NCBI GenBank assembly: GCA_003693705.1
Contig: RBZT01000781.1
Coordinates: forward strand, 1-64,000
DNA length: 64,000 nucleotides
Direction: 5' to 3'
From: Polymyxa betae A26-41
Taxonomy: Eukaryota > Protista > Endomyxa: Phytomyxea
Below the pieces are notes generated by a model. The model was not told the origin of the DNA. It saw nothing but the letters and a program-made list of their open reading frames with translations, and searched no databases. The stretch's first letter is position 1, and each line of letters opens with the position of its first letter. This document shows positions 1 to 31,897 of this stretch, in pieces. A program made the translations under genes and the position numbers.

Positions 1-109
1 CAAGAAGCTCATGTACCTGACCTTTGTTGTCAGTATGATCGAAATAAATAACACTTCCTAATTACGATTATCGTCTTCATTCTGAGCTATAGCTGACATT
101 TCCAAGTGG

Positions 110-20596: not shown

Positions 20597-23500
20597 TTGA
20601 GATCCACTTTATTTCAGTTCCAGGATCCATCTGCCAGGCACCGTGGCACTCTCCATCCCATGCTTTTGCGCTATATTCAAAGGCTCAAGAGCGAAAGGAA
20701 TCCAGAATTTGATAATGAAACTGTCGCACGAGTCTGTGTTACATTCATCTGGGATAATGATGAAGGGCGATACGTGCAAGTTGGTGGATGCGATAACAAT
20801 CACCATTATTTGAAGAAAACGCGGTTCGATATTATTCGCGCTGAACCTCATTGCCATGCGGCTTTGAGAATGAAAGGTCGCGACGATCATGAAAATTTGG
20901 ACGAATTAAATTCGATATGGGGGTTTGACGTAACCGGCGATATCATTCCATCTTTACATTTGCTCAAAGAATTTCAAGACAATGGGTTTATGAGCTACGA
21001 GAGTTGCTTCGACACCGATCTTGAAGCTATACATTTGTCCCTAAATCTGTTTAAAGGCATTTGCGATGATGAAAGTCCAGCTTTCTCTCATTCTCGTAAC
21101 GCCAGCTTGCAATGGCTTGCCGATTTTCTCCTTCCTGATGGAGAATCCGAGGTGAATTTGCTGTCGGATTGTGAAGATGACATCTCTGCCTTTCTTGACA
21201 GCATCAAACCACCTCTGGTCCCAGAACATGGCCCTATCAAAGGCTTATTGTGCAAATTACTACCTTTTCAAGCTCGTGCGCTAACATGGGCACTTAATCG
21301 TGAGAGAACCCCAGAATCATCTGAGAAAAAGCTTGACGTTCTTTTCGAGGAACTCGTTTGTGATGATCGCAGTCTGTTTATTAACAGGTATACTGGACGG
21401 ATGACGACAGTTCGATTTGTTGATAAGACGGAGACTATTCGCGGGGGAATGCTTTGCCAGACTATGGGGCTGGGAAAAACAGTCGAACAGATCGCTCTTA
21501 TTCTTTCAAATCCAGCCACTGAAGAATGGTTAAATTCTGGAGAATTCGAACGCCATCCCGCCACTCTTGTTGTTTGCCCTCAAGCGTTGCTCGGACAATG
21601 GCAGCAAGAAGTTTCTCGGCATGCTCCACAATTGCGAGTTGCAATTGTTTTTACCCAGAATGACTTCCATATTCTGGACAATTCTGAACTTGACATCATT
21701 CTAACTTCATATGAAATCATTCGTCAGCAGAGTGTCTATCAAACCGCAAATGAGAATCGGCGAACATCGCGTCGTGGACGCTTGTCTATACACCCAGTTC
21801 CATTTCTGCTGACTGAATGGTGGAGAGTTGTACTTGATGAAGCTCAAAAAGTCACTGGAGAATCTGGCGTTACGAATGCGGCTCTTTGCTTAAAAGCGAA
21901 CATCCGTTGGGTTGTTTCCGGGACGCCGATCTGCCGTCGTCTTCAAGATCTGTCTGGTCTTCTTCGATTTTTAGGCCATAATCTTGGAGACCGGTTCTAT
22001 TTCGAAAAGCTGGGCCTGGGTAGCGAGCAGCGTTTACGAGATGTTCTGTCCGTCTTGATGTATCGGCATGGAAAGCAGTGTGTTGAACTTGAGCTTTCGA
22101 TTCCTCCGCTGACAGTTGAAACTGTCTACGTTCAGCTTTCTGACATTGAACACATCAAGTACTCCAAAATGATCCGGAAATGCAACGCTATCAAGAACTT
22201 CTCGGGAATGAAAGAAGAGACGCGAATTGCTCGTCTTTGCCGAATGTTGCTTTTATTGCGAAAAATTTGTTGCTGTCCGTTCCTGGTCGATGGAAGGAAA
22301 GGCGATACGGTTCAGGCATCGGAAGCACTTCCGATCTTTGAGATAAAGAAACGGTTATGCCGCGAAGCCGAGCTTGAAGTGGATATCGCTAGTCGTGTCA
22401 ACATCAAGTGCATCACTCAGCTGGCAACTGCTTTAGCGGTTATTCCTAAAGATTTTGCACGTGCCGAGAAGTGCTTAGAATCGGCACTCTCTATTTCCGA
22501 GAATGCTGTACTGCCGTTTCTAACTAATGAGGGCGATAAAGATTATCACAGTGGAACCCGGCTGGAGCATGTCAAAACACTCTCGGGGCGTGCTGTTATT
22601 CTAGAGTGCCTCGGTCGTGTTGAAGACGCGCGTAGCATGCTGTTAAACTGTCACAATACTGTTGATCAGTATTTGCTGTTGCAACTGTCGAAACTAGAGG
22701 ATGCGCATTCGTCCACATCAAAAAATGACAGCATCTCGGAAATGAGCTTGGAAGACATGTTTGGCAGTTGCTCAACCCGATTCACCCTGGCTATATTCAA
22801 GTTGATGATGGGTAAAGAACCTGCTGAAGCAATTTCCAAGCTTAAAAATTTGAACTCCTTTATATGTTCATATCTCGCTGCATTCGATGACGAAATTGCG
22901 ACTGCTGTCGGGGAAACATCTCAGGTATTGGCGTGTTTAAGAGGGCGTCTGGAGATGGAACTAAAAATCAGCCTGCATCGACGAACGTTATTTCGGGACC
23001 TAATTGCACTACGCATGTCTGTTTTGGAATGCCTCGTTGATTTGACGACGTTGTCACTTATCGATGAAGGTGACAGCTATATCACTGACAGGAGCGCTTG
23101 CAAGAACCTTCTTGATTCCCTTCCAGTTGACCGCGATCGAACTGACGTGGGATTTTTTGCCGAAGACAATAGCGATGAAGAAGACATTCAAGATGAAGAG
23201 AATTTTCGAAAAACTGCTCTTGGAGAAAATCGTACCGGGTTCAGTCTAGACGGTGATACGATAGACCATCTTGTTTTGCAAGGATCGATAATGACAGGGT
23301 TGCTTCGAACGGCCGAGAAACTTCATCTCGATGTGGACGAAGGCACCTTGAAAACGTTAACATCTCGGGTTTCTCTTATAAGTATTGTCGTTGGCAAAGA
23401 GCCCGCTGCAATCAGTTCTCGTTGTTCTTCATGGATTTCTGCAATGTTCGCGGTGTTAAGAACCTGGCTTTATCTACGTCAGATGATTACCGATAATGAT

Positions 23501-24529
23501 GAAAACGACCGTATCGCTGGACAGTGCTGGGAGCGATGCTTCGTTATCCGCGAAGAATTAAGGAATTTGTATCGACGGTCGTTCGATCAGCTTGAAACCT
23601 TTTTCGAAGATATTCGTGCTGGCAAGCAAGATGTCTTTGGAGTAGCTCTCGACGTGCGGCGAGCGGAAGCCGATTTGAAGAAATCGGAACAAGAGTTTCA
23701 TTCCCGGCAGAATGAACATCGGTACATTTCTCAAAAATTCGCAGAAGATGTACAGCCTGATGAGACGCGTATTCATTCTGACGACGATGTTTGTCCTATT
23801 TGCCGGGGCCAGTTGCAGACGCCAATTGTAACGCCCTGTGGTCATGTCTTTTGTTCTCCCTGTCTCGCAAGCTATATGGTATCTGGTCATGGACTCTGCC
23901 CGTTGCGCTGTCGCAGTCGTTTCCAGTTTAAAGACTGTCTACTTATTGACGAGTCAACCCCAGAGCAAAGAAGCAAACGCTTCAAAGGAGAAAAATCCGT
24001 TGATGAAGTTCAGTCGGATTATGGTGCCAAGATCAGCGACTTGTTGAAGAGACTGTTTGCTATTCGTCGTGAAGATCCTTGTGCCAAAAGTCTAGTGTTC
24101 TCTCAGTGGACCGACCTGCTAGACGTTTGCAGGATGGCGCTTGAAGAACACGGCATCGAATGCGTTCAGCTGAAAGGCGACTCTCGGCAGAAGGCGAAGT
24201 GTATCGACAAGTTTTTGAACAGTCCTACAATGACGGTTTTCTTGATCCCAATGGCGCAAGGAGCTTCTGGATTGACGATGGTGGCTGCCAGGTATGCCTT
24301 CATTATGGAACCTGGTCTGAATCCCAGCCTGGAGGATCAAGCTATCAACAGAATTCACAGGATCGGGCAAAAACATACTACAAAAGTAGTCAAGTATATT
24401 GCTAAAGGAACGGTCGAAGAGCCTATCGCCGAAATTCAGGAGAGACAACGCTCGACTGGCCATCAAGCACAAAAGGCCTACACACCTGAAGTATTCGACG
24501 AATCCATTCTCAATGACATCTTTAGATAA
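20597..24529 (+). CDS. SNF2-family helicase with C3HC4 RING (SHPRH/Rad5-like); true start uncertain, probably in an upstream exon
   Basis: 1310-aa ORF: GGMLCQTMGLGKT, WWRVVLDEAQ, WVVSGTP, RING CPICR..PCGHVFCSPC..CPLRC, KSLVFSQW, QAINRIHRIGQ; long helicase insert as in SHPRH. Confidence 0.9.
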   Translation: MRSTLFQFQDPSARHRGTLHPMLLRYIQRLKSERNPEFDNETVARVCVTFIWDNDEGRYVQVGGCDNNHHYLKKTRFDIIRAEPHCHAALRMKGRDDHENLDELNSIWGFDVTGDIIPSLHLLKEFQDNGFMSYESCFDTDLEAIHLSLNLFKGICDDESPAFSHSRNASLQWLADFLLPDGESEVNLLSDCEDDISAFLDSIKPPLVPEHGPIKGLLCKLLPFQARALTWALNRERTPESSEKKLDVLFEELVCDDRSLFINRYTGRMTTVRFVDKTETIRGGMLCQTMGLGKTVEQIALILSNPATEEWLNSGEFERHPATLVVCPQALLGQWQQEVSRHAPQLRVAIVFTQNDFHILDNSELDIILTSYEIIRQQSVYQTANENRRTSRRGRLSIHPVPFLLTEWWRVVLDEAQKVTGESGVTNAALCLKANIRWVVSGTPICRRLQDLSGLLRFLGHNLGDRFYFEKLGLGSEQRLRDVLSVLMYRHGKQCVELELSIPPLTVETVYVQLSDIEHIKYSKMIRKCNAIKNFSGMKEETRIARLCRMLLLLRKICCCPFLVDGRKGDTVQASEALPIFEIKKRLCREAELEVDIASRVNIKCITQLATALAVIPKDFARAEKCLESALSISENAVLPFLTNEGDKDYHSGTRLEHVKTLSGRAVILECLGRVEDARSMLLNCHNTVDQYLLLQLSKLEDAHSSTSKNDSISEMSLEDMFGSCSTRFTLAIFKLMMGKEPAEAISKLKNLNSFICSYLAAFDDEIATAVGETSQVLACLRGRLEMELKISLHRRTLFRDLIALRMSVLECLVDLTTLSLIDEGDSYITDRSACKNLLDSLPVDRDRTDVGFFAEDNSDEEDIQDEENFRKTALGENRTGFSLDGDTIDHLVLQGSIMTGLLRTAEKLHLDVDEGTLKTLTSRVSLISIVVGKEPAAISSRCSSWISAMFAVLRTWLYLRQMITDNDENDRIAGQCWERCFVIREELRNLYRRSFDQLETFFEDIRAGKQDVFGVALDVRRAEADLKKSEQEFHSRQNEHRYISQKFAEDVQPDETRIHSDDDVCPICRGQLQTPIVTPCGHVFCSPCLASYMVSGHGLCPLRCRSRFQFKDCLLIDESTPEQRSKRFKGEKSVDEVQSDYGAKISDLLKRLFAIRREDPCAKSLVFSQWTDLLDVCRMALEEHGIECVQLKGDSRQKAKCIDKFLNSPTMTVFLIPMAQGASGLTMVAARYAFIMEPGLNPSLEDQAINRIHRIGQKHTTKVVKYIAKGTVEEPIAEIQERQRSTGHQAQKAYTPEVFDESILNDIFR

Positions 24530-25729: not shown

Positions 25730-27077
25730 ATGGCATTCGACGCCGTCACGATTGGTCTGCTGTTGGGTCTAGTTACGGGCAGCATTGCCTCAAAGAATCA
25801 GAAACTGGTTTTTAGTGATGAGTTCGACGAACTCGACACGTTCCGTTGGCAGCATGAGGTTACCCTTGGTGGTGGTGGAAAGTAAGATGTAAGCATCCTT
25901 GCCAATCAAGATGTTTTAACTGTGGTTCAGTTGGGAATTTGAACTCTATTCGAATAATCGCTCAAATAGCTACACTCGAGATGGGTAAGTCGTGCTCTAT
26001 GATTCATTGCATACAACTAATAATCGACAGAGTCCTCTATATTCAGCCAACACTAACTGCTGACATGATTGGCGAGCAGAACTTAAAAAGCGGCTACACC
26101 ATGGATCTTTGGGGAAATGAACCCGGGAATCTTTGTACCGGCAATGCGTTCTATGGATGTCAACGAACTAGCGGTGCTGGAGGCAACATCTTAAACCCGA
26201 TTATGTCTGCTCGTCTTCGTACTTCACGAAGCTTTTCTTTCCGCTACGGGCGAGTGGAAGTTCGCGCGAAAATGCCAAAGGGTGATTGGATTTGGCCCGC
26301 CATCTGGTTCCTCCCTCAATGTAAGGCAGTTGCAACGATTAAAGAGTCCAGATCTGATGTGCTTTGCTAGGGTCGGCGTATGGTCAGTGGCCTGCGAGCG
26401 GTGAAATTGACATGGTTGAGTCCCGTGGAAATGCAAAGTCTTACCCGGGTGGTGTTGATAAAATAGCTTCGACTTTACATTGGGGTCCATGGGCAGCTGA
26501 GGATCAGTGGCCGCAAACGCATGGAGAATACCAGTTGCCCGAAGGCGACTTTTCAGACGATTTTCATTTATTTGTTCTAGACTGGAGCAAAGACCGCCTC
26601 TATACCTACGTTGATGATCCTAAGAACATCGTTCTCGATGTCCACTGGAACGGTGATGTTTATTTTTCATCTTTGACGATGGTTATGCTGACTTGTTTAT
26701 AGGAACTGGCCACTGGGGACTTGGCGGATGGGATGACAATCCTAATATGAAGAATCCATGGGAAGGTCGCGAATCTAATGCTCCTTTTGATCAAAAGGTA
26801 GTTTTTTTCCAACTGCTATTCCAAGTCGCCCACGGTCATGTAGTTCTTTATGATTCTTAATGTCGCTGTCGGCGGAACGAACACTTACTTCCCGGATGGT
26901 GTCGGTGGGAAGCCATGGCGGAACGATGATCAACATTCAGTTAATGCATTTTGGGCTGCCAAAAACCAATGGTACCCAACTTGGAATGGAGAAGACGCTG
27001 CGATGAAGATCGATTATGTTCGCATCTATCAAGACGAGACTGTCCTTGACTATGAGAAAAGAGATGAATTTATCTGA
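25730..27077 (+). CDS. Secreted GH16 beta-1,3-glucanase (beta-glucan recognition protein-like subfamily), 5 introns
   Basis: Signal peptide, LVFSDEFD, GGGNWEF, YGRVEVRAKMPKGDWIWPAIW, catalytic WPASGEIDMVE, LNVAVGG. Confidence 0.95.
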
Positions 27078-28932: not shown

Positions 28933-29658
28933 TTAGATGAAGCCTCCATAGCCAGCGCCATACCCTCCAGGATAGCCGCCCAGACCATAACCCCCCATAC
29001 CAAAGCCGCCCAGACCAATGCCACCCAGACCATAGCCGCCCAGACCATAGCCTCTCATACCATAGCCGCCCAGACCAATGCCACCCAGACCATAGCCTCC
29101 CAGACCATAGCCGCCCAGGCCATCGCCTCCAAAACCGGCACCGCCTAACCCACCAATACCAGCTCCTAGAGCACCAAATCCTCCAGGACCACCATATCCT
29201 CCAGCTCCGCCAAGGCCTGCAGCTCCACCAATTCCTCCAGCTCCGCCAAGGCCTCCAGCTCCACCAAGGCCTCCAGCTCCACCAAGACCTCCAGCTCCGG
29301 GAAAGTGATATTTTGTATACAACCCTCGTGGGAAGTTCCAGACTCGTGTTTGAACAATTTGTCCAGGGCCTGATCCTGGACCACCTCCTCCAGGACCTTC
29401 AGCAGGACCTGGTGCAGGTCCTGCTGGACCCCCTCCAATTCCTCCTGCAGCTTGGCCATTTGTACCTGGTCCGGTAGCAGGTGCAGCTGTTATCGCAGGT
29501 GCTGCAGGTGCAGCCGGAGGTGCTGCAGGTGCTGCAGGGGCTGCTGGTGCTGCTGGTGCTTGCAAAGCAACAAAGCGTTTATTGTGATCATGTTCAGCTG
29601 CAGTGATTCCAAGGATAATTGTGATCGCTAACAACACCAACGAAGCTTCTCTCATCAT
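28933..29658 (-). CDS. Secreted Ala/Pro/Gly-rich protein with GLGG[YI] repeats (cluster gene A)
   Basis: Signal peptide, HDHNKRFVALQ, (APA)n, GGAGGL and GLGGY repeats; intronless, 241 aa. Confidence 0.85.
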   Translation of the reverse strand: MMREASLVLLAITIILGITAAEHDHNKRFVALQAPAAPAAPAAPAAPPAAPAAPAITAAPATGPGTNGQAAGGIGGGPAGPAPGPAEGPGGGGPGSGPGQIVQTRVWNFPRGLYTKYHFPGAGGLGGAGGLGGAGGLGGAGGIGGAAGLGGAGGYGGPGGFGALGAGIGGLGGAGFGGDGLGGYGLGGYGLGGIGLGGYGMRGYGLGGYGLGGIGLGGFGMGGYGLGGYPGGYGAGYGGFI

Positions 29659-29712
29659 CGTTGATTATGGCTGTGAATTGTTTAGACGACCGAAACGGCC
29701 GCCATTCCATCG

Positions 29713-29724
29713 GTGGTCGGTCGG
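29713..29724 (-). promoter_or_regulatory. Putative shared cis-element CCGACCGACCAC upstream of cluster gene A
   Basis: Identical 12-mer at 31150-31161 upstream of gene C; related GGTCGGATGTCGG at 30545-30557 upstream of gene B; all 52-59 bp from the ATG. Confidence 0.5.
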
Positions 29725-30157
29725 ATAATTCTTTCAAGCGTCTTCACCTTGTCTTGAAAAAACCGATTGAATACCAGGTCCTTTGCTTCGAATTTATTGT
29801 CTTTAACAAATTTGTAATCTTATTTTCGCTGTTTTCTTGAATTCTATTATCCTACGTTTTGTATCACATCATCATACCACACGAAGCGTCATAAAAATAT
29901 CGATGTCCGCCGGCGACATTATTTCTATTGCAAAGACAGAATACATTCGTTGGAAAGTTTGTTTACTACGCCTCGAGCATTGCAAAGTGACAATGCTAAT
30001 ATGGTACTACTTGAAAGGTCATCTCTAGCATCTGATATGCCATATGTTCTACTGAATATTGCACGTAAGCAGTGACAAGTTTAGCAGTAGAGCACTTCGA
30101 CTGATTTCCAAATATTTATGGTGAATGTCTGCTGATTAGATCCCAAAGGCGCCTCTT

Positions 30158-30493
30158 TCAGATCGCGTTATTGAAGGAATCAACGCCTCCATATCCACCG
30201 CCAACGCCTCCATATCCACCGCCAACGCCTCCATATCCACCGCCAACGCCTGTCCCGCCAGTGGCCGTCGTCGTGCCTGTCGTGTAGCCGGTCGTCCCGG
30301 CCCCTGTGAACTCAGTGCCTAGATCGGTTTCCCCCAGGCCAACGTCGCCAACAGCACCTCCTTGTACGGCACCTCCTTGGACGGCACCGTATCCAACTTG
30401 AAGAGCGACGAAATCGTTCCGCTGCAGCGGCTCTAACTCGTTAGCGTAAGCAAGCGCTGCCAGGAGAACGATGACGAGTGCTGAGCCGAACAT
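30158..30493 (-). CDS. Secreted Gly-rich protein (cluster gene B)
   Basis: MFGSALVIVLLAALAYA-NELEPLQRNDFVALQ, then GGAVQ repeats and 3x GGGYGGV. Confidence 0.8.
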   Translation of the reverse strand: MFGSALVIVLLAALAYANELEPLQRNDFVALQVGYGAVQGGAVQGGAVGDVGLGETDLGTEFTGAGTTGYTTGTTTATGGTGVGGGYGGVGGGYGGVGGGYGGVDSFNNAI

Positions 30494-30800
30494 GACGATT
30501 TGTAAATGAATGGAACCGGGCAAGAGCTTGTCGGATACCGACCCGGTCGGATGTCGGCACTTTCTTGTGGCGAGCTATTAACAGGTCAGACTTCTCTTTT
30601 GCTGCAGGTAAACCATATGTTCGACGTTCCGACATAGCTATAACCGACATTCTATTCTGTCATTTGGGGGGATTACACGCTTGCATCCAGCGATGTCAAT
30701 TATCCAATGCTTCTAAGTAACCCGCTTCTGTATGCTAGAAAAGTACATTATTGCAGTAATTTATTGACGTCAACCACAACGAGAGCTGCATGATTCATAT

Positions 30801-31091
30801 CTACCAGAATGGATATCCATATCCCCAAGGTCTCCATCCCCATAATCGTCCCCATGGATAGAAGGGATAACCCCAGCCAAATCGTCGAAAACCTAATCCT
30901 GGCCACCATTGTAGGGATTGAAATTCTTTAGCATTTGGCTTGTTAGCTGGGTCGACGTTCGATTCCAGAGGAGCGAACGCTGGCGGGTTTGCTTGAGTAG
31001 CAACTTCAGATGCCTCTAGCGAAGCAAACTGGAAATCATTGGCGTCTGCCAAGGCGGCGACAATGGCGACCAGAATGATCGTCTTCAGCAT
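30801..31091 (-). CDS. Secreted precursor with Trp/Gly/Tyr/Arg-rich C-terminal peptide (cluster gene C)
   Basis: Signal peptide, pro-region with FASLE/FAPLE/FQSLQ, core WWPGLGFRRFGWGYPFYPWGRLWGWRPWGYGYPFW. Confidence 0.85.
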   Translation of the reverse strand: MLKTIILVAIVAALADANDFQFASLEASEVATQANPPAFAPLESNVDPANKPNAKEFQSLQWWPGLGFRRFGWGYPFYPWGRLWGWRPWGYGYPFW

Positions 31092-31483
31092 GATGAATGA
31101 ATTTGGTTCGGGTCGGGCGATGAGCTAGCAACAAGGCCTGGAACCGGACGTGGTCGGTCGGCATGTCGGGGATTTCCCACTATCGTGATCGTCCTGTTGA
31201 ATGTAGAATATTCTCCTCCTTTTTACAGAAAAAAAAATCTGCCTCTTTGTACTCTACACAGCACACTGAAATGATCTCTTTTCTAATGAAACGCGGTCAG
31301 CTTGCTCCTCTTGCAATATTCCATTCGTGCATCATCATCAATCCTTTCGTTGCAGTCTCAATAAAAATCGGTATCTACGTTGGCTCTATAGTCGTAATCA
31401 CAAAAAACCCCTTCATGGGGTCAGATGTTATCTCTATGTTCACAGTCTCATTTTATTCAGTCCAATTGGAGGCAGCTTGATCA

Positions 31484-31897
31484 TTAGTACCAGTAGGGAG
31501 AACCACCCCAACCTCCTCCCCAACCTCCTCCCCATGGATAGAAGCCTCCACCATAGAATCCGCCACCCCAACCCCATGGGCCACCACCCCAATATCGGAA
31601 TCGTCGGTATCTCCAGCCTCCTCCAAAGCCACCACCAAACAGTGGCCATTGTAGAGCCTGGAACTTCTTGTGCTTGTCATCATGTGCGGCGCCCGCTTCC
31701 AATGGAGCGAAATTCGGCGCTTGTTCGTTGGCTTCAAGCGGGCTAAAGTTCGGTGGGTTGGCGTCGACCGGGCTGAAGTTCGGCTGATTGACGTTTGCTT
31801 CCAGCGGCTGGAACTGCTGCTGGTTTGATTGTTGTGTGGCGTCGTTGGCTAGGGCCAGACCCAGCAGGGCGATGGACAACAACACGACGGTCTTCAT
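31484..31897 (-). CDS. Secreted precursor with Trp/Gly/Tyr/Arg-rich C-terminal peptide (cluster gene D)
   Basis: MKTVVLLSIALLGLALA, repeats FQPLE/FSPVD/FSPLE/FAPLE/FQALQ, core WPLFGGGFGGGWRYRRFRYW...PYWY. Confidence 0.85.
   Translation of the reverse strand: MKTVVLLSIALLGLALANDATQQSNQQQFQPLEANVNQPNFSPVDANPPNFSPLEANEQAPNFAPLEAGAAHDDKHKKFQALQWPLFGGGFGGGWRYRRFRYWGGGPWGWGGGFYGGGFYPWGGGWGGGWGGSPYWY

Follow-up and report, generated by a model that had tools for sequence, protein, structure and literature searches.

The 64,000-nucleotide stretch of the Polymyxa betae A26-41 genome analyzed here (contig RBZT01000781.1; hereinafter, the window) contains, between positions 28,933 and 31,897, a head-to-tail array of four minus-strand open reading frames (ORFs), denoted A, B, C and D, each of which runs uninterrupted from ATG to stop. 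All four predicted proteins start with a hydrophobic, signal peptide-like segment closing in a small-x-small site (signal peptides were called from hydrophobicity and the -3/-1 rule alone), followed by a pro-piece and a low-complexity core, and in all four, the last unit of a short motif, F-[QV]-[AS]-L-Q, is the exact point of the switch to the core. Judging from the sequences, seven genes encoding predicted pre-pro-proteins make up a small, lineage-restricted set, and no other locus of this set is as large as the cluster. The features of the locus are the following:

28933..29658, minus strand: gene A, 241 amino acids, with a signal peptide-like start, a 12-residue pro-piece ending in FVAL and a 209-residue core from Q
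29560..29574, minus strand: junction FVALQ of gene A
29713..29724, minus strand: 12-mer CCGACCGACCAC, 55-66 nucleotides (nt) upstream of the ATG of gene A
30158..30493 (from the ATG, MFGS...), minus strand: gene B, 111 amino acids, with a 14-residue pro-piece (one LEPLQ unit, then FVAL) and an 80-residue core
30398..30412, minus strand: junction FVALQ of gene B
30801..31091, minus strand: gene C, 96 amino acids, with a 43-residue acidic pro-piece that contains two internal F-A-[SP]-L-E units, and the junction FQSLQ
30909..30923, minus strand: junction FQSLQ of gene C
31150..31161, minus strand: 12-mer CCGACCGACCAC, 59-70 nt upstream of the ATG of gene C
31484..31897 (from the ATG, MKTVV...), minus strand: gene D, 137 amino acids, with a 65-residue acidic pro-piece that contains four internal F-x-P-[LV]-[ED] units, and the junction FQALQ
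31649..31663, minus strand: junction FQALQ of gene D
31727..31783, minus strand: 30-bp tandem duplication in the pro-piece of gene D, the source of the repeated N-F-S-P-x-[DE]-A-N units

The junctions were located through the genome motif listing and the pattern count in the window, where a degenerate DNA pattern for F[QV][AS]LQ has 5 matches compared to 1.21 expected (none of 100 shuffles reached 5). Four of these 5 matches are the in-frame junctions of A-D, and a chance origin of the motif count in the window is excluded. A preliminary description of this DNA had listed the motif units in each gene, observed that the last unit ends in Q at the composition switch (FVALQ in A and B, FQSLQ in C, FQALQ in D) and pointed to a sequence shared by A and D; all these elements were recovered at the positions given there, the shared sequence reading HD..K[KR]F.ALQ. 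The further statement that the cores are unrelated, with the leader being the conserved part, held only in part: the pentapeptide is retained and most of the cores cannot be aligned, but those of C and D are homologous. With BLASTP alone, only the leaders of C and D aligned (E 1e-6), whereas in a MAFFT alignment, the two proteins show 53% identity over the aligned columns, core included, and have RRF, FYPWG and WG..WG in common, identifying D as a paralogue of C.

The core of A combines (PAAP)n, then a unique stretch in the middle, then GLGGY-type repeats (43% Gly, net charge +2), with tandem repeat arrays at 28972-29127 and 29172-29298 that have periods of 15 and 60 bp, and about ten GLGGY-type units of the 15-bp period. 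The Gly/Thr/Val-rich core of B (net charge -5) contains three exact GGGYGGV repeats, with a 21-bp repeat present in 3.4 copies at 100% identity (30181-30251). The cores of C (36 residues, mostly Trp, Gly, Pro and Arg, with 22% Trp, net charge +4, isoelectric point (pI) 10.4) and D (55 residues, Gly/Trp/Tyr/Arg, net charge +4) are shorter. As seen in the core repeats of A and B, the cores are built from young tandem repeats, and the 30-bp duplication accounts for part of the repeated pro-piece of D.

The preliminary description had also presented A-D as four co-oriented intronless genes with signal peptides in an intron-rich region, and this is borne out by the uninterrupted ORFs, each with its signal peptide-like start. 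The neighboring LDH gene is broken into separate ORF pieces (Ldh_1_N and Ldh_1_C), so "intronless genes among intron-containing ones" is a fair description. It is extremely improbable that some or all of these ORFs are chance open frames in Gly-codon-rich repeat DNA. Overlapping ORFs do exist in the other frames and on the opposite strand of A and D, and exact look-up of A-D in a collection of 15 billion proteins yielded no match, but an ATG, a signal peptide-like segment and the shared motif come together only in the reported frames. Furthermore, AATAAA is found downstream of the stops of C and D, the same 12-mer occurs upstream of A and C, an outside homologue spans the full length of C and D (E 2e-14), and gene E, a member of the set located on another contig, is present letter for letter in the ESM Atlas.

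Elsewhere in the window, two adjoining plus-strand ORF pieces at 25939-26702, just upstream of LDH and the cluster, match glycoside hydrolase family 16 (a marginal Pfam match, 22.2 bits). The plus-strand region 20597-24529 is, in contrast to its neighbors, an uninterrupted frame of 1,310 amino acids, in which SNF2-type helicase motifs and a C3HC4 RING finger were recognized by eye, suggesting a Rad5/Rad16-like protein.

Genome-wide census of the motif and relatives of the precursors

The genome searched comprises 27,085,814 bases in 1,001 contigs at ~45% G+C, with the window corresponding to contig C351; the published draft of Polymyxa betae, obtained from purified sporosori, consists of 1,001 contigs with 27,085,946 bp and 45.1% G+C (PMC6328671). 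This draft was binned from a mixed sample, so that contamination is formally possible; the seven genes are located on four contigs of 27-157 kb. Every site in the genome encoding FQ[AS]LQ, FVALQ, FVSLQ (Leu as CTR or TTR) or FQAQQ in any frame was located, and the surrounding DNA was retrieved and translated in the frame of the respective motif; the codon classes scanned leave out, for example, F-x-A-L-Q with any other second residue, Ser encoded by AGY, and FVSLQ with CTY for Leu. Outside the cluster, there are 130 in-frame occurrences of these sequences, among which only three show the precursor layout, that is, the motif 35-37 residues past the Met of a hydrophobic segment, followed by a core with at least 60% G/Y/W/F/P/R:

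G000:C340:17784-18266, plus strand: gene E, 160 amino acids, FQALQ, core Tyr/Gly/Pro-rich and then Arg/Gly/Phe/Trp-rich
C587:28294-28662, plus strand: gene F, 122 amino acids, FQALQ, core Gly/Tyr/Arg/Met-rich
C903:25571-25819, minus strand: gene G, 82 amino acids, FQALQ, core Pro/Arg/Tyr/Trp-rich

In all three proteins, FQALQ is located within residues 35-41 and is immediately followed by an Arg-rich, aromatic low-complexity core; the cores are unrelated to one another, and the loci are unlinked. The chance of a precursor context is 7.9e-4 per random in-frame position at the same loci, a background that is inflated because E, F and G themselves are counted in it, and the probability of finding three or more such contexts among 95 sites is 6e-5. 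Within the codon classes scanned, the set totals seven genes, A-G. Protein searches of the same genome, for which A-F were the queries (G was not), detected no paralogues beyond the query itself, and a search with a leader profile, which recovered 4 of the 7 known members, is too insensitive to serve as a census.

The codons of the motif vary between copies (TTT/TTC, CAA/CAG, GCT/GCC/GCG/TCC and CTA/CTC/CTT/TTA/TTG), indicating that the motif is conserved at the amino acid level, and given that the genes, with the exception of the C/D pair, are otherwise unalignable, the pentapeptide appears to be selectively retained. Its presence at the same position in front of unrelated cores is as expected of a signal that is read by shared machinery. 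The shared protease or sorting signal envisaged in the preliminary description is, in this respect, strengthened by three independent, unlinked genes that carry the motif at the same position, although the strict motif is confined to the seven genes. It is highly improbable that the pentapeptide is a passive relic of an ancestral leader or an element acting at the nucleic acid level. All seven genes, which form a small, lineage-restricted set and encode signal peptides that align at 23-37% identity, may indeed descend from a single leader, but the five residues persist, always exactly at the junction and encoded by different codons, whereas their surroundings have diverged past detection.

The internal units do not share this behavior. 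The F-x-P-L-E-A sequence was tried as a genome-wide signal and dropped, with 7 matches (3 of them in D) compared to 12 for the control; the two sites outside D for which the DNA was inspected are not in secreted contexts. The internal unit is at chance level outside D, and the strict motif is not proteome-wide. Neither does the motif accompany every secreted Gly/Tyr/Trp-rich protein. A search with the composition words GGYGG, GYGYG and GWGGG, which occur in the genome about as often as expected by chance, led back to A, B, D, E and F and also to a new ORF, H (G000:C944, locus L120, minus strand, ~120 amino acids). H encodes a secreted Gly/Tyr/Leu-rich protein with the core directly after the signal peptide, making it a natural negative control in comparisons with the motif set. 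Together, H and the chance-level internal units indicate that the motif marks a small set rather than the secretome or all glycine-rich secreted proteins.

Several other occurrences of the motif belong to different kinds of sequences. Near-identical long frames with FQSLQQL are present on at least five contigs (C73:3756, C314:4044, C593:2923, C628:53429 and C754:11671; loci L052, L060, L071, L075 and L089) and represent either a gene in multiple copies or a family of mobile-element ORFs, with no relation to the secreted set. Another dispersed family of repeats consists of short, near-identical ORFs of ~60 amino acids that contain FVALQ by chance (C123:3721, C448:366, C695:10128 and C988:34116; loci L010, L017, L033 and L041). 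A separate side observation, on contig C621 (locus L119, minus strand), is an open frame of more than 490 amino acids with a His-rich start and a Lys/Asn/Ala/Ser-rich low-complexity body, the beginning of which lies beyond the piece of DNA inspected.

The upstream regions of the genes also show common elements. The 12-mer CCGACCGACCAC is found in only two copies in the whole genome, before A and C, at similar distances from the ATG, and CCGACC or its complement is present within 200 bp upstream of A, B, C, E and G. These elements suggest co-regulation.

Outside the genome, relatives are scarce. A profile of C and D, compared to 1.84 billion representative proteins, had a single match, P0001, a 116-amino acid protein (E 2e-14) encoded on a 1,090-bp metagenomic contig from a JGI sample. 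P0001 has the same end of the signal peptide as C and D (A-A-N-E), similar F-x-x-L-E and x-P-L-x-A-N units, the junction F-Q-A-Q-Q-W and the core landmarks RRF and WG..WG. P0001 keeps the core of C and D, so that the mature part of this family is under constraint; the F, the Q in the second position, the last Q and the W next to it are common to the junctions of all three proteins, but the Leu is not. A search with the C, D and P0001 profile retrieved only P0001 and a marginal match, P0002 (E 1.4e-3, hhalign probability 97%), which is encoded on a contig with 63% G+C and is related more weakly, by its architecture. The P0002 contig (locus L007, an ENA metagenome) contains a CCGACC element ~20 nt upstream of the ATG, an anecdotal observation.

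Other searches for relatives were negative within their respective scopes. A profile of all eight leaders retrieved only P0001; Pfam searches with A-D had no match, and neither did a word-indexed protein search with D. Scans of metagenomes, one with the C/D/P0001 alignment and one with E, yielded no confirmed locus, and the ESM Atlas cluster nearest to D, an oomycete "glycine-rich protein" set, scored 0.88, under the level that counts. In the literature library searched, we found the motif strings in no relevant paper and no papers on glycine-rich secreted proteins of plasmodiophorids. The link of the seven genes through the junction motif is new.

Anatomy of the precursors and proposed maturation

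The pro-pieces of the seven proteins are neutral or acidic, with 12-65 residues and net charges of 0 to -5. In C, D, E, F and G (5 of the 7) as well as in P0001, an acidic pro-piece precedes a cationic core with a charge of +4 to +14 and a pI of 9.8-11.6; in the five proteins from the genome, the core is strongly Arg-cationic. All seven cores consist of aromatic residues (Tyr, Trp or Phe) spaced by Gly or Pro, with a Tyr content of 6-18%; Lys is absent from the cores. The core of E is predicted to be disordered, with a mean pLDDT (predicted local distance difference test score) of 0.35 for the ESM Atlas model of this protein. Around the motif, the residue preceding the F is R, D, E, K, Q, P and D in A-G, respectively, and the residue following the Q is A, V, W, W, Y, T and F. 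Across the eight sequences (A-G and P0001), only the F and the last Q of the motif are invariant.

An acidic segment that varies in length, tolerates duplications and lies ahead of a product that is sticky or cationic looks like a discarded pro-piece, and for this reason, we consider it probable that the pentapeptide is a maturation signal. In the scenario that we favor, the pentapeptide would be the recognition element for a secretory-pathway endoprotease that removes the pro-piece at the junction, whereas in transit, the attached pro-piece would prevent harm from the sticky or cationic core. Should the cut fall between L and Q, every product would start with Gln, which a membrane-anchored glutaminyl cyclase could convert into pyroglutamate. 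The genome encodes a plant/bacterial-type glutaminyl cyclase (PF05096, two exon matches with 128 and 73 bits, read separately without a joined spliced model; G000:C496:30737-31512, minus strand, loci L117/L118), and the ORF upstream of it includes a hydrophobic anchor, which makes it probable that this is a secretory-pathway enzyme. Pepsin-like aspartic proteases of the A1 family are encoded at no fewer than six loci (at least 6). An L|Q cut may fit the presence of the cyclase and the pepsin-like proteases, and a cut one residue further, LQ|x, may suit a papain-type enzyme with Leu at P2.

Alternatively, the motif could stay uncleaved and direct the sorting of the protein to a regulated secretory organelle, or it could act as a handle for docking or cross-linking, for instance, by donating a Gln. 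Two Gln residues flanked by hydrophobic residues look like good acyl-donor sites. The invariance of the F and the last Q, unlike that of a classical P1/P1' pair, as well as pro-pieces as short as 12 residues, also agree with a motif that remains in place. Nevertheless, this alternative appears improbable. Removal of the pro-piece accounts better for the difference in charge between it and the core, and the pro-pieces of C, D and P0001 vary greatly in length through tandem duplication, as would be expected of a discarded part. In addition, the genome contains a single, marginal transglutaminase-core match (PF01841, 24.9 bits, E 3.4e-4), which counts against a transglutaminase handle within the scope of that search, oomycete-type enzymes lying outside it.

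Several observations weigh against maturation at the pentapeptide as outlined above and the material function considered below. The P0001 junction, with Q in place of L (FQAQQ), has no hydrophobic residue at P1 of an L|Q cut or at P2 of an LQ|x cut, and a strict L|Q site is weakened by this finding. P0002 lacks the motif and instead has KKPKE ahead of its WWGG core, within the same overall plan, and H has neither a pro-piece nor F-x-x-L-Q. Masking of a cationic core misses two of the seven proteins, given that core B is acidic (-5) and core A is near neutral (+2). The protein collections searched, which do not include the genome assemblies of other plasmodiophorids, contained no match beyond P0001 and P0002. 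Finally, the cyclase, the aspartic proteases and the tyrosinases considered below are generic enzymes without a link to these genes.

Possible nature of the products

What the released peptides might do is a more speculative matter. The sole property common to the seven cores is the arrangement of aromatic stickers on Gly/Pro spacers, as in self-assembling proteins, and on these grounds, the products could be structural or adhesive material, an interpretation that we regard as possible, if somewhat short of an even chance. Conceivably, the peptides would be co-deposited outside the cell and would self-associate via cation-pi and pi-pi contacts, forming a material that serves as matrix or cement in the wall of the resting spore or cyst and is hardened at Tyr by the tyrosinases of the parasite. 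The role in the spore wall, cyst coat or penetration apparatus that the preliminary description put forward is suggested by composition alone. That the motif is a cleavage signal and, jointly, the products are structural or adhesive material is a tentative proposition, with the balance of probability tilted against it.

Matches to tyrosinase (PF00264) above the Pfam cut-off are found at seven loci of the 27-Mb genome:

C846:218167-218700: tyrosinase, PF00264
C761:111078-111605: tyrosinase, PF00264
C467:53740-54225: tyrosinase, PF00264
C908:4491-5036: tyrosinase, PF00264
C991:25710-26178: tyrosinase, PF00264
C189:19480-19623: tyrosinase, PF00264
C596:48473-48592: tyrosinase, PF00264

Two of these matches contain in-frame stops, which may represent introns or broken copies. 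Overall, the matches suggest an expanded phenol-oxidase set. In P. brassicae, a secreted tyrosinase is fused to a chitin-binding CBM18 module (bioRxiv 10.1101/2020.12.23.423615). Separately, the GYGYG word led to a protein of ~190 amino acids (G000:C375, locus L128, minus strand) that is predicted to be secreted and contains three Cys-rich hevein/CBM18-like repeats with Gly/Asn/Pro-rich linkers, and is probably a chitin-binding wall or masking protein.

The same junction maturation could, alternatively, release secreted antimicrobial, microbiome-directed peptides that defend sporosori or zoospores against microbes of the soil or remove competitors. This possibility agrees with the anionic pro-piece that C, D, E, F, G and P0001 have ahead of a small cationic core. 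Families of antimicrobial and toxin genes classically pair a conserved leader with hypervariable cores, and the fast turnover reflected in core tandem repeats of up to 100% identity would also find a place there. By composition, C presumably resembles Trp-rich peptides and G Pro/Arg-rich peptides, and we take D and F to resemble the nematode NLP/CNC Gly/aromatic peptides, which also start with Q-W. However, A, with its 209-residue, near-neutral core of the GLGGY type, and the acidic B are misfits and yet share the leader motif, and the upstream element is common to these misfit genes and C. Furthermore, Pfam and protein-collection searches revealed no homology to any known antimicrobial family. 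An antimicrobial function appears rather unlikely, and the material and antimicrobial readings remain close.

Taken at its broadest, the scenario would be that plasmodiophorids possess their own non-basic pro-protein maturation code, F-x-[AS]-x-Q, possibly with pyroglutamyl products, whereby a dedicated protease arms co-regulated, disordered aromatic/Arg-rich peptides that form an uncharacterised extracellular material of the infection cycle. The matrix of the resting-spore wall, the cement of the cyst or adhesorium, and the Stachel may be candidate sites of such material. We consider this complete scenario unlikely to hold in all its parts.

P. betae is a plasmodiophorid root endoparasite that is not culturable and is the soil-borne vector of the rhizomania virus. 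To our knowledge, almost nothing is known of the material of its spores, which remain resistant for decades, of its cysts, or of the apparatus with which it attaches and penetrates. A tag of five residues that singles out seven secreted proteins of extreme composition provides a short list of candidates for these materials or for an antimicrobial coat, and serves as a substrate motif for seeking the responsible protease. The tag also leads to a falsifiable mass-spectrometry prediction, namely, N-termini at or beside the motif, possibly pyroglutamyl. If the motif turned out to be conserved in Spongospora and Plasmodiophora, it would represent a processing code of the whole lineage, distinct from the rules of the dibasic and PEXEL types.

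Comparison with known precursor systems

Short motifs read within the secretory pathway are known from apicomplexans. The PEXEL/TEXEL motif (RxLxE/Q/D, cleaved by plasmepsin V/ASP5) and the S-phi-x-E site (ASP3, plasmepsin IX/X) resemble the pentapeptide described here in that a short sequence with Leu and Gln or Glu is located past the signal peptide; these motifs are read by a dedicated secretory-pathway protease, and pepsin-like proteases are present in this genome. Apicomplexan cargo, however, consists of folded effectors and organelle proteins, in contrast to the low-complexity peptides of the present set, and the motifs themselves do not match. For PEXEL/TEXEL, there is no Arg at P3, where all seven junctions have Q or V (an Arg two residues further upstream is found in A only), and the Q adjoins the L, at P1' rather than P2', the residues at P2' being A, V, W, W, Y, T and F. 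For S-phi-x-E, Ser never precedes the F, and the spacing is that of F-x-x-L-Q, five residues. The likeness to the apicomplexan S-phi-x-E/SFLQ sites drawn in the preliminary description therefore does not stand, the defining Ser being absent from all seven junctions.

With respect to the possible products, parallels are offered by the Eimeria oocyst wall proteins GAM56/GAM82 and the Gly/Tyr proteins of the schistosome eggshell, the latter combined with tyrosinase; these are likewise secreted Tyr/Gly-rich low-complexity precursors in parasites with resistant walls, and they undergo processing and cross-linking. Here, too, Tyr-rich secreted precursors and phenol-oxidising enzymes, the tyrosinases, are encoded in the same organism. 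The Eimeria and schistosome proteins are, however, larger, lack this junction motif and show no homology to the set, and for the present proteins, location in a wall is a conjecture from composition. Lamprin and moth chorion proteins, which self-assemble through GGLGY-type repeats, resemble the GLGGY-type units of A in composition, a likeness that is convergent at best. The E, F and G cores share their Gly/Tyr/Arg/Trp make-up with small adhesives of the mussel foot protein 3 type, a similarity in composition that is, again, convergent at best.

The NLP-27..34 and CNC (caenacin) peptides of Caenorhabditis are small, secreted and Gly/aromatic/Arg-rich, are encoded in tandem clusters and, in several cases, start with Q-W. 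The cores of C and D start with the same two residues, and the core of F, with its G-Y-G-R-G-M texture, is reminiscent of these peptides. In contrast to the present set, the nematode core directly follows the signal peptide or is cut at basic sites, and NLP/CNC peptides are not known to have an F-x-x-L-Q leader. No homology of the set to these nematode peptides was detected in the collections of 1.84 and 5.8 billion proteins, where only P0001 and P0002 were found, or in Pfam.

The general organization of the set resembles that of the precursor families of amphibian skin and cone snails. As in those families, a conserved pre-pro leader with a fixed element at the junction is combined with unrelated cores (the motif and the signal peptides align across the set, and there are no core-to-core matches except for C/D), acidic pro-pieces precede cationic cores in five of the seven genes (A and B being the exceptions), and the genes occur both in tandem and dispersed. 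The amphibian and cone-snail precursors are cut at dibasic K-R by furin/Kex2-type convertases, whereas the element described here is the non-basic F-[QV]-[AS]-L-Q; a Kex2/furin site was rejected because L-Q stands directly before each core and only 2 of the 7 genes have a dibasic pair ahead of the motif (K-R in A and K-K in D). There is no sequence homology to these families, and the organism is a rhizarian parasite of plant roots. By its predicted architecture, the set matches the conserved-leader, hypervariable-core kind of precursor, with a new, non-basic junction element, in a rhizarian parasite.

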